This document shows positions 4,821-41,053 of a DNA stretch of 64,000 bases, in pieces. The notes below the pieces were generated by a model that searched no databases, had not been told where the DNA came from, and saw nothing but the letters and a program-made list of their open reading frames with translations. Source of the DNA: Podarcis melisellensis (taxonomy: Eukaryota); the NCBI GenBank assembly GCA_964234715.1, contig OZ174279.1; one strand, 5' to 3'. Positions within the stretch are counted from its first letter, which is position 1; every line of letters begins with the position of its first letter. Position numbers and translations under genes: made by a program.

Positions 4821-5712
4821 TAGTTCTACCTACAGATTCTAGAGAGCAGCCCCTCTCTGGAGGTGCTCCCTCCTCCTCAAGGTTATATCTAGGAACAGAG
4901 CGGGTGGAAATGTTTGTGTCAAGAGGGCAGGATTGTTCTTGGCACACAGTTCTTCCCTCAGTCAGCTGATTCGAGGACAGTCAGAATCCTCCTAAAGAAA
5001 GGCCTTGATGGAGTTGCCTGCCTCCCTTGCTGTTCCCTGCGGTGGTTCTGGCTGTCTTGGCAAAGAGCAAGCTCTTCCTGGGAGCACCTTTCCCCTCTCT
5101 AGATCAGATCGGGGAATCTGCCGAGAAAGGACAGAGTGTTTTGTGATGGTCTTGTGCGGCACGGTATCCAGAAAATGCTGCCTGCATTTTTGGCTTATTT
5201 CTGGGGAGAGAGCGATGAAGGATGCTCTGGTGTCCAGAGCCTTCAGCTCAAATTCTCCAAGTACCTCCAGTCTCCCTTGGGCTTGCAGAAGAAGGCAGCC
5301 ATCCTGGGTTTTGTTTTTTGTTTTTTAAATTGAATGCAAATGGCTTTTTGTGATCTGGCAACCCATCCTGCACAGTGCTTGATGGGGGCAGGCTGCAGCG
5401 TTTGACTCCATGCCCTTGGGTCATGGGGCCACACATTCACAATGGCACGGAAAATTAGTGGCTGTGCTTTAAACCTTTGCCGATGTGCAACTCTGTCTGC
5501 TATTTTTACCCAGGCAGGTGGGTGACTGTTTAATTTTAGCTCAGTGCCAGCACTGTCTCGCCAGGGAACTGGTGTGTGTGTGTGTTCACAGCTTTCTTTT
5601 ACATATAGAGGGAGATAAGTGGGGTGATGACACCAGGTTCTTAGACTCTGACTGCATGCAAAGGTGACAGCACAGTGGTGTACTTATGGCAACACAGGCT
5701 ACGCGTAGAAAA

Positions 5713-6470: not shown

Positions 6471-7380
6471 CTATACTCTCTATACGTATGACTGTACAGC
6501 CATCTATTCCAGCAACAAAATCATCAAGTTTGCTGATGACACTACGGTGGTGGGGCTCATTTCAGGAGGGGATGAGTCCGCCTATCGGGACGAGGTGGAG
6601 CGGCTCTGTGTTTGGTGTGGAGAGAACAATCTGGCTCTTAATACGGCTAAGACCAAGGAATTGGTGGTGGATTACAGGAAAAAAAAGGCGGACATTCAGC
6701 CCTTGTATATCAACGGGGAACGGGTGGAGAGGGTGGCGGAATTCAGGTTTTTGGGAGTGACTATCGATCAGGGCATGACTTGGAGCGCAAATACCACTGC
6801 TCTGGTGAAGAAGGCCCAGCAGAGAATTTATTTCCTCAGACTTTTAAAGAAGAACAATCTGAGTGAGAGACTGCTGGTGTCCTTCTATCGAGGCTCCATA
6901 GAGAGCATTCTCACATACTGTATTTGTGCTTGGTTCTCCAGTTGTACAGCTAGGGAGAGGAAGGTGCTCCAGAAGGTCATAACCACAGCCCAAAGGATTA
7001 TTGGTCATCCTTTCCCATCTTTGGAAGAACTGTACGGTTCCCGTTGTCTTAGGAAAGCAAACAACATCCTGCAGGATTCATCTCACCCGGGATACAGTCT
7101 GTTTGCACTACTGCCTTCTGGCAGGAGATATAGAAACATCAAGTCAAGGACAAATAGACTGAAAAATAGTTTCTATCCAAGAGCTGTGGCCTTTTTGAAT
7201 GCTGTAACTCGATAGTGTGACCTGGGAGTTTGATGGGTGTGGGTGTGGGTGTGGCTGGAATGTGGTTTGTTTGGTTGTTGTTGTTGTTTTGCTTTTGTTG
7301 TTTTTTAAGGGATGGCATCCAATTTCGTTGCACTTGTGCAATGTTGCACTTGTGTAATGACAATAAAGAATCTATCTATC

Positions 7381-7426: not shown

Positions 7427-8235
7427 TTTAAACACTAGGCTGGATTGTTGCCTCTCAGCTTTGATGCAATGAATACTGCTAGTAAAACACTTCCTTCAGT
7501 CACTGCTGAAATTTGAGAGCAAAGCTATTTTGGCATCTGGAGGTGGATGAAGCTTAACTGATCACACTCAGGCATGTGCACACACATGTGTGCACACGTA
7601 CAGACTTCAGAGACATAGTACTTCTTAATTGGCACCTCATGCCTCCTGGAGAAGAGTTGCAGCAAAGTTTGTAGATAGGGCTGGGGTAGACCCCTGGCAG
7701 AAAGCTTGGAGGACTGCTGCTTGTGAATTTAGACTAGGGGTGTCTTCCAGATGTTGATGGACTACAACTCCTATCATACCCAGCCAGCTTAGCCTGTGGT
7801 CAGGGATGATGGGAGTTGTAGTCCAACAACATTTGAGGACCCATTTGAAGAAGGCTGATCAAGATGAATCAATTGTCTGAGAGTATAGGGCAGCTCCCTG
7901 CGGACCATTTACTCCCTGGGTGGGGCACAAAACACCTCCATATTGATATCTAACCAAGGTTTCAGAACAGTGAGCCTTGCTGCTCTAAGCAGTTGGCTTA
8001 GGGAAGAGGAAGGAAGTGTGTGAGAGTAAGAATTAAATTTGAAAGACCATAAGAAGTTGCCGTAGGTGAAGATGGACACTCCTGGCCTCCATATCTTACC
8101 TTGGGGGAGATTTGAGCTGTGGAGGGAGTTACTGTTTCTTCAAGCAGGCAAAAAGCAAAGCAGAAACCCAGCTACTTCTGCACATTCATTTAATGTGCAG
8201 TTTAATTAAGCACAATTTAATAACTTCCCATTCAT

Positions 8236-8465
8236 TATATATAAAGCTCCGTGGGGAGGGGGGAGGGAAGCCCCAAACTGCCAGGCCAGGTGGCAACCCT
8301 TGCTGTGGGACAGAGGCTGCCTCAGTTTGTGGGGTGGGTAGGGGGTAGTGAGTTCACACAGGAAGATCCAACGCAGTAGGTCCTGATCCTGCCCAAGTAG
8401 CTCACCTTCCCCTTCTCCAATGCTCACCCCACTGGGCTCCCCCCGGGCCAGCCAGTTATTTTTAG
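8236..8465 (+). promoter_or_regulatory. Putative promoter motifs upstream of the 8640 exon: TATATATAAA (8236-8245) and MEF2 consensus TTATTTTTAG (8456-8465)
   Basis: Direct motif matches (YTAWWWWTAR); function inferred only. Confidence 0.4.
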
Positions 8466-8639
8466 ACAGGCGCCATGTGTTGGAAGGAGAACAATTAATG
8501 TAATTGGTTTGGGGAGCCTCGTTTGTGCACGGGGCCGAGAGTGGCTCTGAATCTGCCTGGGAGAGGCTGGCACCAACGTAGCAGAGGACCGGGGGGAGCC
8601 AAGGGAAAGCAGGGTGGGCAACGCATCTGGCATGGAGAC

Positions 8640-8757
8640 ATGGAGAGGGAAACGCCACACAGTGACAGCCTCTTGTATGCCTCCCTTATCGTCATCCTCC
8701 TGGTCATGTCCTACTGGTTCACAACCAAGTGCTTCAAGATCCTCAGTGGTATTGAAG
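8640..8757 (+). CDS. KCNIP2: Candidate alternative first coding exon of KCNIP2 encoding a hydrophobic (putative TM) N-terminus MERETPHSDSLLYASLIVILLVMSYWFTTKCFKILSGIE
   Basis: Strong Kozak gacATGG; 39 codons + 1 nt, then donor GAAG|GTAAAT. Phase 1 matches the acceptors at 39600 and 40929. Upstream TATA-like and MEF2-like motifs. I do not recognise it as a named isoform. Confidence 0.6.
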
Positions 8758-9086
8758 GTAAATTGTGGGCTGTGGGGGGTGGAGGGTGTTTGGTGGAAAG
8801 GAAGTGCTGAAGGCAAACCCCAGATGGAAACGCTGGGAATCGGGAGGAAAGGGGTTTCTTGCCGCATAGCAGGCAGCAAGGATAAGGGGCTCCCAGCTCC
8901 TTTACAGCCGCAGTGTCTTCTCTTTTTCTTCTTCTGCAATTGCTTTACTCTACCTGCACATTTCTTCCTTCCCTGGGTCCCTGATCTCTTAGCACGTTGG
9001 TAGTGGGCTACCCAGTTCCCCTCAGTTTGTAAAGTCCCCATACCTGTGCACTGATCCATGTTCCCAAATTAATGCATGGTCTAATG

Positions 9087-9263
9087 TGGTAGTCTTCAGC
9101 GTTTTGAGACCCAGGACCCGCTTTTAGTCCAAACATTCATTGGGGGGTCTTCTTCTTAATCTTTTACCATATATTTGCATGGTGGTAGTGCTCCTGTTGT
9201 GGCCCACCTTGGATTCAGCTGCAACCCAATAGTGGGTCCCAACTCACCAGCTGAAGACCAGTG
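9087..9263. mobile_element. hAT-type MITE
   Basis: Short TIRs (gtcttcagc/gctgaagac); perfect 8-bp TSD GTCTAATG (9079-9086, 9264-9271). Confidence 0.75.
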
Positions 9264-9527
9264 GTCTAATGGACAGCCTTGGGGCTTAAATTCCTAAAGG
9301 GAGACTTTGGAGAACCGCAGGTCATCCTCCTCTGACCTGGGGTGGGGCTTTCCCCCATCTAAACCCAGTTGTATTGTGTCTAGTTATGGTTACTTAGAGG
9401 TAGGAGAAAGCACTCTGCACATGCTCTTAACCTGATCTTTGTGCCATGCCCATTTGGAGCAGGAAGTGGGGTTTCTTCAGGAGGAGCAGCTGTGTTTCCG
9501 ACAACAGAGGTGTCACATGAAATACAA

Positions 9528-9668
9528 CAGGGATGGGGAACCTGTGGCCCTCCAGACATTGTTGGACTCCAGTTCCCATCAGCCCTCTGCCAGTATGGCC
9601 CAATGATCAGGGATGATGGGAGTTGTATGCCAGAAACATCCAGAGGGCCACAGGTTGCCCCACTCCTG
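9528..9668. mobile_element. Palindromic hAT-like MITE. Representative of a family with further copies near 257, 1148, 7735, 10925, 13870, 27795, 35325, 39232, 43918, 44820, 51657, 54405 and 55808
   Basis: CAGGGATGGGGAACCTGTGGCCCTCCAGA...GAGGGCCACAGGTTGCCCCACTCCTG; 8-bp TSD AAATACAA/AAATACAG. Confidence 0.75.
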
Positions 9669-10458
9669 AAATACAGAATCGATACCTTCTAACTTTAATG
9701 TAGCTTTCAGTGCATCCAAGTTCCCTGCATCAGAAGGTGCAAAGAAGAGGCTGCAAGCTGTGGGGGCCAATGCATTAAGAGGGCGGAACCAACAGAGAGA
9801 GAAAAAGGGAGGGAGGGAGGGTAGGTGGGTGCCTGCCAAGTGCTGACACTTAAAACCTCAGGAGCAAAGCGAAAGCAAACTGGACAACATTTCAGAGTCT
9901 CATCTCTTCTTTCCACCCCCAGATTTATGGGCTCAGTATTCTATACTGACAGAAGCATTTGTTGGTAATCCATTTGTGAATTTCCTACTTGCTATTAATG
10001 AATTCAGAGTGATGTCGCTTATTTGTTATAAATAATTTCTGAAGCACTTCAGTATGTCAGGTGTTTTACTACTCATCATCTCACTTGCCTCTCTGTCCCT
10101 GTGAAGTAGGTCATTGCAATTTCCGTTATAAGGACAATAAGTCAAGGCTGAAGTCCTTTCAGCAGGATCAAACAAAAGTGCCCCAGCCACATTTCCTGAT
10201 TTGTGTGATGCTCTTGCAAATTTGAATCCAGTCCTAAGAGTGCACTATTGCTGCTGTTTCTCCTTTCCCCCTTTTTGGAGTAACTCCCACTAACTACATG
10301 TAGTCCATCACACAGTGGTGCCAGGGCAGGTCTTCAGAGCAGGAGTCCAGGGCCTCACTCAGCAGAATGGGTAGCCCCCTCCCAAATATGCAGCAGGAGG
10401 GGGGACTCACCACAGTGTGCAGGAAGTGAAGCAACATACATTGCCATTTAAGAACCCC

Positions 10459-10810
10459 TTTGTTTAGTCGTTTAGTTGTGTCTGACTCTTCGTGATCCCA
10501 TGGACCAGACACGCCAGGCACTCCTGTCTTCCACTGCCTCCCGCAGTTTGGTCAAACTCATGCTGGTAGCTTTGACAACACTGTCCAACCATCTTGTCCT
10601 CTGTCGTCCCCTTCTCCTTGTGCCCTCCATCTTTCCCAACATCAGGGTCTTTTCCAGGGAGTCTTCTCTTCTCATTAGGTGGCCAAAGTATTGGAGCCTC
10701 AGCTTCATGATCTGTCCTTCCAGTGAGCACTCAGGGCTGATTTCCTTAAGAATGGATAGGTTTGATCTTCTTGCAGTCCGTGGGACTCTCAAGAGTCTCC
10801 TCCAGCACCA
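10459..10810 (-). mobile_element. RTE-BovB LINE 3' fragment
   Basis: RVPRTARRSNLSILKEISPECSLEG...YFGHLMRR...LEKTLMLGK; 11-bp TSD TTAAGAACCCC (10448-10458, 10811-10821). Confidence 0.9.
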
Positions 10811-21438: not shown

Positions 21439-21541
21439 ATGAACCTGGAAGGCCTGGAGATGATTGCCGTGTTGGTGGTTCTGGTCCTCTTCGTCAAGGT
21501 GCTGGAGCAGTTTGGACTCTTTGAGCCGGTCTCCTTGGAAG
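21439..21541 (+). CDS. KCNIP2: KCNIP2 alternative first exon (KChIP2x / KIS-type transmembrane N-terminus) MNLEGLEMIAVLVVLVLFVKVLEQFGLFEPVSLE
   Basis: Near-identical to the mammalian KChIP2x and KChIP4a N-termini; Kozak accATG; phase-1 donor G|GTAATG. Confidence 0.95.
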
Positions 21542-39599: not shown

Positions 39600-39698
39600 G
39601 CAACCCACCTGGCCACGCTAAAAAAGCCCTGAAGCAGCGGTTCCTCAAGCTGCTGCCCTGCTGCCGTCAGCCCAAATCCATCCCCTCAATCAGCGAAA
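39600..39698 (+). CDS. KCNIP2: KCNIP2 exon 2 ([33 protein letters not shown]) with the palmitoylation CC motif; ends at a GC donor
   Basis: Matches KChIP2 [15 protein letters not shown]; acceptor tttgcag|G; donor A|GCAAGT is required to keep frame. Confidence 0.92.
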
Positions 39699-40928
39699 GC
39701 AAGTGACACTTTATCCCTCTCTGTGTGTCTTCTCTGTTCTGTGACATCATTAACTCCCAGGAGCAGGGGAAGTGGGAGAAGGGATTCCTTCTGTATAGAA
39801 TTTATATAAAATACTTGTAGGCCACTTTTCTCAAACACCAATCCAAAGCAGTGTATTATAGAAGACTGTGAGAGTGATGTAGGCAGGGACAAAAGGGAAT
39901 AGAGGAGACAAAATGTAGGCTCTCTGCCTCAAGCCGCTAATTGTATATGGCTGCTTTGTGGATGAACTTGTGTCTGGAATAGCTGTCTTCTCCAGCTTTC
40001 TACTCCAGTTGACAGAGCTCAAAATGAATAGGAAGACAAAGGACAGCAAGGTGGGGATTTTGTCCTAGAACACTGGAGAGGGCAGGTTGTATATGGAGGC
40101 AATATATGCAGCCATCATGACAACAGCCGATGCATCTCATTGATTGATTACTTATAATAGTGTGTTTGGGTTGAGTTTGTGTGTGGTTCCAATTAAAACC
40201 TGCTTCTGCCTTAGTCAATGCCTCTGTCACTTATTTGATGCTGTTAAGAGTTTGGTTTCCTTGATTATGGTGAATGGGCCTGACATTATGAATTTGCCTA
40301 CCTAGCAACTAACATGTTTTTGAATCCAAAGCAGCGTTAGTGGTTCTGCTGCTTTTCATAAGAATCTTTCTACTTCCATTATCTCTGCTTGTATATCAGT
40401 AAGTCAACAGAAAATACAAAAATGCCACAAGCATTTCTTTCTTCCAAAGGAAAGTAAACCTGGTAGTACTGACCCTGGTCTTCTCAATGTGCATTGAAGT
40501 GAGGAGTGCATAACACTGTTCACAGCCTGTGTCCATGGAAGATGGTGTAAATCAACTCTTATCTCTGGTTTCTATCCAAATTGGTCTGAATTTAATACTT
40601 ATCGTTTCCCTTGATGCAGTATTGGGAGGGGGGTATTAATGCATTTCACAAACAGGGCTCTATCCTGAATTGACCAAAGCTCTCTAAACCTCCTCTAGGC
40701 CAGGATGATACTGCAGCACTTGATTTCTGGCTGTAATCCAGGTGTGAGATCTTGCATCTAAAGGTAGTTCCACAGAGTACATGCACATGAGATGGGTCTA
40801 TTTGTGCCAATGCAGGGTGGGAAAGGAAATTCAACAACTCACTTTGAAAAAAATTAATTCAAGGAATGCAGGTGGGATGCTTTGGTTCTGTCCATGCTAT
40901 ACTTTTGAAGCTCTTTCTTTTCTTGCAG

Positions 40929-41053
40929 ACAGTGTAGAGGATGAGTTTGAGCTCTCCACTGTTTGTCATCGGCCCGAGGGCCTGGATCAGCTGCAGGAGC
41001 AAACCAAGTTCACCCGCAAGGAGCTGCAGGTCTTGTACCGAGGCTTCAAGAAT
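40929..41053 (+). CDS. KCNIP2: KCNIP2 core exon ([41 protein letters not shown])
   Basis: KChIP2 sequence identity; AG/GT boundaries; 125 nt. Confidence 0.97.

Follow-up and report, generated by a model that had tools for sequence, protein, structure and literature searches.

The N-terminal variants of KChIPs set the surface number of Kv4 channels and the speed of their inactivation, and the locus described here raises the question of whether the KCNIP2 gene of a lizard possesses a further membrane-anchored start. The analysed DNA, hereafter the window, is a stretch of 64,000 nucleotides from Podarcis melisellensis (contig OZ174279.1). KCNIP2 lies on its + strand with the core EF-hand exons at ~40.9-45.6 kb, and a short reading frame with the appearance of a first exon is located 31 kb upstream of these core exons. 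As argued below, this segment, 8640-8757, is very probably a genuine alternative first exon of KCNIP2, with a putative promoter of its own and a predicted membrane-tethered product.

Layout of the exon and its splice partners

The features of the window referred to in the text are as follows.

8420..8540, +, conserved promoter-like block, ~100-220 nt 5' of the ATG, 91.5% identical to L001
8456..8465, +, MEF2 consensus YTAWWWWTAR (TTATTTTTAG), a sequence motif
8632..8634, +, upstream ATG, out of frame, 8 nt before the 8640 ATG (ATGGAGNCATGGAG), in strong context
8640..8757, +, coding part of the putative alternative first exon, 39 codons + 1 base, 118 bases
8758..8763, +, splice donor GTAAAT, phase 1 (AAG/GTAAAT, preceded by the extra G at 8757)
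21439..21541, +, KChIP2x/KChIP4a-type TM first exon of KCNIP2, matching 3DD4_A; comparator and positive control
39600..39698, +, palmitoylation exon (G)..., alternative in-frame partner, acceptor cag/GC (G+GC), phase 1
40929..41053, +, common KCNIP2 exon (D)..., most likely splice partner, acceptor cag/AC takes phase 1

A first-pass annotation had described a strong-Kozak ATG, 39 codons with a hydrophobic run and two following Lys, and a phase-1 donor, and all of these elements were re-found in the sequence. The ATG at 8640 carries G at both -3 and +4, and the 39 codons are translated as MERETPHSDSLLYASLIVILLVMSYWFTTKCFKILSGIE. In the encoded peptide an acidic N-tip leads into a predicted helix (residues 6-36) with a hydrophobic core (residues 11-29), followed by TTKCFK; the two Lys are K30 and K33. 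The donor of this exon scored 9.0 with the PWM, versus 7.5 for that of the 21439 exon.

The same annotation held that the exon shares its layout with the 21439 exon while being unrelated to it in sequence, and this description was borne out. When both strands were scanned for chance occurrences of the layout (ATG, at least 30 codons, a phase-1 donor of at least 7.5 and a 17-residue hydropathy of at least 2.2), the window returned the 8640-8757 exon, the 21439 exon and nothing else, while the expectation in simulated sequence was 0.083 per window. Meanwhile, BLASTP gave no similarity between the 8640-8757 peptide and the 21439 exon. The latter behaved as a true KChIP2x-type exon: it matched the N-terminus of the KChIP4 chain 3DD4_A at 26/29 residues (E=2e-9, PDB profile search) and showed 100% protein identity with its bird counterpart.

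Joining 8757 to 40929 creates an Asp codon (G+AC), and the predicted junction peptide is ...SGIE/D/SVEDEFELS. None of the gene models found joins the palmitoylation exon at 39600 to a first exon of the 8640-8757 type. As a separate observation, the palmitoylation exon carries no in-phase GT donor at 39695-39704; the reading frame into 40929 is preserved solely by a GC donor (GAA A/GCAAGT), and this points to a GC-AG intron. Neither motif search nor the ORF/donor scan detected the canonical KCNIP2 first exon at positions 1-39600 of the window. Likewise, the g-type first exon (MSHCQQRCKRQ...TGTLSQ) and a 4e-like exon, both known from the bird loci described below, were not found in the lizard window. 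Because the lizard spacing is ~3.6-fold larger than that of the bird, the lizard g-type exon probably lies upstream of the window start.

The upstream ATG at 8632, which the first-pass annotation does not mention, is retained in both lizards and both birds of a five-species alignment and is absent in the alligator. The frame that it opens is not conserved, with 9-10 amino-acid differences between the lizards, and the resulting uORF overlaps the main ORF, being short in birds and longer in lizards. This ATG may act as a translational brake on the 8640 ATG.

Coding constraint and sauropsid gene models

Selection on the exon could be assessed by comparison with L001, a 3-kb Logan contig of a second, distant lizard-like genome, which encodes P0001. 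This protein was the sole match when the 95-aa genomic ORF that encloses the exon was used in a word search; it is identical to the exon peptide over 40 residues, with no relation between the translated flanks. In DNA sequence, the exon and L001 are 91.5% identical without any indel, whereas the identity drops to 64% in far-upstream DNA (with indels), to 67% in the last 100 nt 5' of the 8640 ATG (with frame-breaking indels) and to 55% in the intron 3' of the donor (with indels). In the + frame set by the 8640 ATG, none of the ten exon differences changes an amino acid (P<5e-6); nine lie at third positions and one at a synonymous first position, and random placement of these substitutions gave an all-synonymous outcome in 0/200,000 trials. 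The other frames of the exon, including the long antisense ORF, would suffer 3-10 amino-acid changes or stops. Hence the lizard-lizard comparison yields a dS of 0.59, a dN of 0 and a dN/dS of 0. The differences at 8690, 8700 and 8723, seen in close relatives, were all synonymous as well.

Over longer distances the exon is similarly constrained. Against birds and alligator the dN/dS ranges from 0.07 to 0.15, the lizard peptide is 77% identical to the bird and alligator peptides, and 27/39 residues are invariant across all species compared. In the alignment of two lizards, two birds and an alligator, the ATG and the donor are in register; the GT of the donor occupies the same column in all five species, and the similarity collapses directly 3' of it. 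Codon-level conservation in other reptiles was thus observed in the second lizard (10/10 synonymous) and in the alligator. The substitution pattern shows 8640-8757 to be coding sequence on which purifying selection acts in lizards, in birds and in an alligator.

Orthologous exons were abundant among bird proteins. An exhaustive representative search with the 39-residue peptide retrieved nine further proteins. These are genomic read-through ORFs that have MERTSLHNDSLLYASLIAILLLISYWFTTRCFKIISGIEG at their start or further inside and lose all similarity immediately after it. A word search with residues 1-40 of P0009 gave 21 matches, and more than 15 bird genomic read-through ORFs were found to carry the exon N-terminus, with a similarity that stops exactly at the donor (...SGIEG). 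The named matches were 'Kv channel-interacting protein 2 isoform X6' of Tyto alba and 'isoform X2' of Cygnus olor; a Phasianus colchicus UniRef entry and KCNIP2 of Alligator sinensis also bear the KCNIP2 name, and hypothetical EF-hand proteins of Hirundo and Bambusicola were matched in the same word search. The Tyto alba, Cygnus olor and Phasianus colchicus models (RefSeq, Ensembl-derived) start at the ATG that matches 8640, and the three named bird KCNIP2 models (P0025, P0026 and P0027) use exactly the 8757>40929 junction predicted from the lizard, in agreement with the earlier splice prediction. Two RefSeq bird models additionally contain a retained-intron-like insert. The Hirundo, Bambusicola, Turdus and Alligator gene models join the exon in other ways. 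In those of Hirundo rustica and Bambusicola thoracicus (P0024 and P0021), the exon is spliced into the middle of the 2x-type exon, and the joint ...SGIE/GLEMIAVLVV... gives a two-helix N-terminus; this join is probably a prediction artefact.

The genomic order supports the same orthology. In L002 (Turdus rufiventris) and in L003, from another bird assembly, the g-type exon, the 8640-type exon and the 2x-type exon follow one another in this order. In the alligator (L004), the g-type exon lies ~1 kb upstream of the 8640-type exon, assembly gaps hide the next stretch, and KCNIP2 is followed by an OGA-like NAGidase gene. In two protein collections, the exon N-terminus occurred in none of the proteins from squamates, turtles, mammals, amphibians or fish; clustering, length windows and gaps in annotation make this absence weak evidence. 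The earlier remark that the exon is 'possibly non-mammalian' fits this result, although a missing mammal match in two collections carries little weight.

The archosaur KCNIP2 models (Tyto, Cygnus, Phasianus and Alligator) share both the donor position and the locus position of the lizard exon. It should be pointed out that they are computed models of unnamed and unstudied isoforms, and that several of them are untidy (retained-intron-like inserts, a skipped exon and fusions). By these alignments, the exon is conserved across sauropsids, and automatic annotation already includes it in birds and the alligator. In the protein collections searched, the lizard exon appears to lack annotation, and squamate annotation seems to miss this conserved KCNIP2 start. 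The novelty suggested for the exon was accordingly only partly upheld: it was found neither in squamate models nor, under any name, in a paper retrieved by our literature search, whereas its annotation in birds and alligator removes most of the claim and leaves a modest novelty. Its practical weight is also modest, because the exon already stands in bird gene models.

Upstream DNA, transcript data and rival explanations

Between the lizards, the block at 8420-8540 is as strongly conserved as the exon. It is 91.5% identical to L001, while the neighbouring non-coding DNA is 64-67% identical. The block holds the MEF2 consensus, GCCATGTG and a homeobox-like pair, ACAATTAA.GTAATTGG; its core reads CCCCCCGGGCCAG, GTTATTTTTA (the MEF2 consensus), GCCATGTG and ACAATTAA.GTAATTGGTTTGGG. 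These core motifs can be aligned to the two bird loci at a similar distance from the ATG, and the alligator locus has an assembly gap where the block would be. The MEF2 motif noticed upstream in the first reading was located at 8456-8465, and the consensus recurs at the matching place in L001 (1839), L002 (13766) and L003 (9774), although such a motif is common and turns up 8 times in the window's first 22 kb. MEF2 would thereby be a plausible regulator of the exon, and the same site may double as a TATA-like element.

Coding conservation begins at the ATG pair, and the DNA that separates the ATG from the 8420-8540 block shows neither conservation nor a preserved frame. A first exon is therefore favoured over an internal one, and the read-in from the g-type exon in the Turdus and alligator models is consequently likely to be an artefact of prediction.

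Several other elements were seen in the neighbourhood. A conserved non-coding block at 5480-5570 is ~72% identical to L001:99-323, with a core far higher, and contains a second MEF2 consensus at 5530; it is a candidate enhancer. The ORF at 5442-5517 beside it was considered as coding and rejected, as its ATG is lost in L001. A reverse-transcriptase fragment and a BovB/RTE-like LINE tail occupy window positions 6547-7215 (+) and 10472-10792 (-); BovB-like LINE pieces are in keeping with a lizard genome. The segments 7694-7881, 9104-9291 and 9480-9667 showed very high depth in all runs together with many inverted or chimeric joints, and they are thus SINE-like repeats.

For a close relative, ~12% of the reads of two bulk RNA-seq runs (tissue unknown) were sampled and zero of them fell on the exon; among the sequencing runs on record as RNA none contains it. 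Contigs X1 and X2, taken from two runs that were guessed to be RNA and preselected because they contain exon words, cover 8489-8768 and 8569-8761 at a depth of ~3. They are collinear with the genome for 11 and 4 nt past the donor, and hence represent unspliced RNA or DNA. The reads and contigs mapped to 7600-10400 included no junction read for 8757>40929 or 8757>39600. The exon is presumably used in the lizard, as its conservation would imply.

Two rival explanations accept the exon as coding and differ in what it belongs to. It might open a small membrane-protein gene of its own, nested 5' of KCNIP2; in two bird assemblies the submitters indeed annotated it as a small gene in its own right, of 114 aa and 71 aa, and no junction read was obtained in lizard. 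These small bird models, however, end in unconserved sequence, and in the part covered by L001 there is no other conserved coding exon between 8757 and 21439. Since three independent models join the exon to KCNIP2 at the very phase-1 junction predicted from the lizard, we regard a separate gene as very improbable. It might instead be an internal exon, with the g-type first exon spliced to an acceptor just 5' of the ATG so that the protein carries both N-terminal modules. Turdus rufiventris P0006 and Alligator sinensis P0028 do read in frame from the g-type exon. Against such an arrangement, the two birds differ 5' of the ATG by a frame-changing indel and the two lizards, at 67% identity, by frame-breaking ones; coding conservation sets in only at the ATG, where the RefSeq and Ensembl-derived models also start. 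An internal exon is accordingly improbable.

Whether the segment is functional at all, in the lizard or anywhere, is the concern of the two remaining explanations. A chance ORF over a conserved non-coding element, or antisense coding by the 211-aa ORF that spans 8424-9059, would account for the fact that the adjacent non-coding 8420-8540 is as conserved (91.5%) as the exon itself. The substitution pattern refutes it, as the + frame alone is free of amino-acid change, and in L001 indels disrupt the antisense ORF; its probability is practically negligible. A functional exon of birds and crocodilians that has become an unused relic in lizards would agree with the missing lizard RNA support and with the failure to find a squamate model. 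Yet two lizards separated by a dS of ~0.6 still agree in 39/39 residues and have both retained ATG, donor and promoter block, and the three differences found in close relatives are also silent, so a relic is most unlikely. An alternative first exon of KCNIP2, presumably in use in the lizard as well, is hence the explanation we prefer.

Predicted membrane anchor and known transmembrane KChIPs

In all species the best 19-residue Kyte-Doolittle window covers residues 11-29, and its mean is 1.91-2.17 (lizard 1.92). AlphaFold2, run on a six-sequence alignment, returned a single helix over residues 6-36 with a pLDDT of 94-95 over residues 11-30. Hydropathy and the AlphaFold2 helix thus both point to a hydrophobic N-terminal segment of membrane-spanning length, and the locus position, the exon order and the named models identify the exon as an alternative first exon of a KCNIP gene. 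A Pfam search with the exon peptide gave no match. Residues 1-10 are net acidic, and the post-helix stretch TT[KR]CFK is net basic with an invariant Cys. The orientation of membrane anchors is governed by the positive-inside rule, so an acidic N-tip combined with a basic post-helix stretch predicts an N-out/C-in anchor. The same topology has been reported for KChIP4a (PMC3973911). Cys31 is a candidate palmitoylation site.

A working model can be assembled from these elements. Transcription would be driven by the exon's own conserved promoter at 8420-8540 with its MEF2 site, and the exon would be spliced in phase 1 to 40929, with the KChIP2x-type and palmitoylation exons skipped. The product would start MERETPHSD-[LLYASLIVILLVMSYWFTT]..., and its hydrophobic helix, flanked by the acidic tip and the basic/Cys juxtamembrane stretch, would enter the membrane as a signal anchor in the N-out/C-in orientation, so that the EF-hand core stays cytoplasmic and clamps the Kv4 N-terminus. 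By analogy with the known transmembrane KChIPs, the membrane-tethered KChIP2 would alter Kv4 trafficking and gating. For the predicted isoform, the membrane insertion, the topology and the effect on Kv4 are all what we infer from the peptide and from this analogy.

Among 17 KChIP variants, four are transmembrane (2x, 3x, 4a and 4e), all defined in mammals; 2x, 3x and 4a form one sequence family with the KIS domain (Jerng and Pfaffinger 2008, as reviewed in PMC3973911), and 4e is distinct (PMC3973911, PMC7269670). The known transmembrane KChIPs alter Kv4 trafficking and gating. With KChIP4a/2x/3x the lizard exon shares its nature as an alternative KCNIP first exon of 34-39 codons with a phase-1 donor, an N-terminal hydrophobic helix and, in the bird models, direct splicing to the DSVEDE exon. 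Within the helix of lizard and alligator there is even a LIVILL, close to LIVIVL, the ER-retention motif of KChIP4a, a likeness that may be due to chance. In contrast, the helix begins at about residue 11 here and at residue 3 in the KIS type, the VKL/VKV motif of the KIS type is absent from the 8640-8757 peptide, and the same KCNIP2 gene already holds a true 2x-type exon at 21439. The hhalign probability between the peptide and the KIS type was <1%, and a PDB profile search with the peptide gave no match, missing 3DD4, which the 21439 exon hits. Membership in the KIS-domain subgroup (MNLEGLEMIAVLIVIVLFVKLLEQFGL N-terminus with LIVIVL and VKL) was therefore rejected on the blank BLASTP, hhalign and PDB profile results.

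KChIP4e is comparable in architecture. Its TM segment spans residues 10-32 (PMC3973911), and like the lizard exon it has ~10 polar residues before the TM segment, the same length class and the same phase. The 4e-type variant is listed for KCNIP4 only, and the same review gives a description of 4e, with an 'LLH-position' clue (PMC3973911), that is fitted by a bird exon reading MATAEAPWDLQGLQTVGIILLLCSSLKILHALGIIDLT. This exon lies 3' of the 2x-type exon in both bird KCNIP2 loci, at L003:18932-19045 and L002:22588-22701, separate from the 8640-type exon. As both bird loci carry this distinct 4e-like exon, the 8640-8757 exon is not of the 4e type, and its assignment as a KCNIP2 paralogue of KChIP4e was rejected, the profile comparison being likewise blank. 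The bird MATAEAPWDLQGLQTVGIILLLCSSLKILHALGIIDLT exon presumably resembles the mammalian KChIP4e sequence.

The most fitting description of the 8640-8757 exon is another member of the transmembrane KChIPs, distinct in sequence from those already named. The first-pass proposal of a second, distinct anchored isoform is thereby right as to a distinct TM-type exon and falls short in number; birds have three TM-type first exons (8640-type, 2x-type and 4e-like), of which this is one, and if the present reading is true they carry three membrane anchors on one KChIP gene. A wider generalisation is tentative and, in our judgement, falls somewhat below an even chance: the exon would found a third, sequence-unrelated class of TM N-terminus in sauropsid KCNIP2, kept almost unchanged for ~280 million years behind a MEF2-bearing promoter, absent or lost in mammals, and with a Kv4 phenotype distinct from that of the KIS type. 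The anchor sits on KChIP2, the main cardiac KChIP, behind a MEF2-type promoter. As a fifth anchor, strongly conserved and of unrelated sequence, it would offer a natural experiment for separating the effects of tethering as such from those of specific residues in transmembrane KChIPs.

The 8640-type and 4e-like exons may have a very old common origin. The hhalign probability between the two bird exons was 0.7%, and ungapped they are identical at 9/38 positions, with a shuffle P of ~0.015-0.02.
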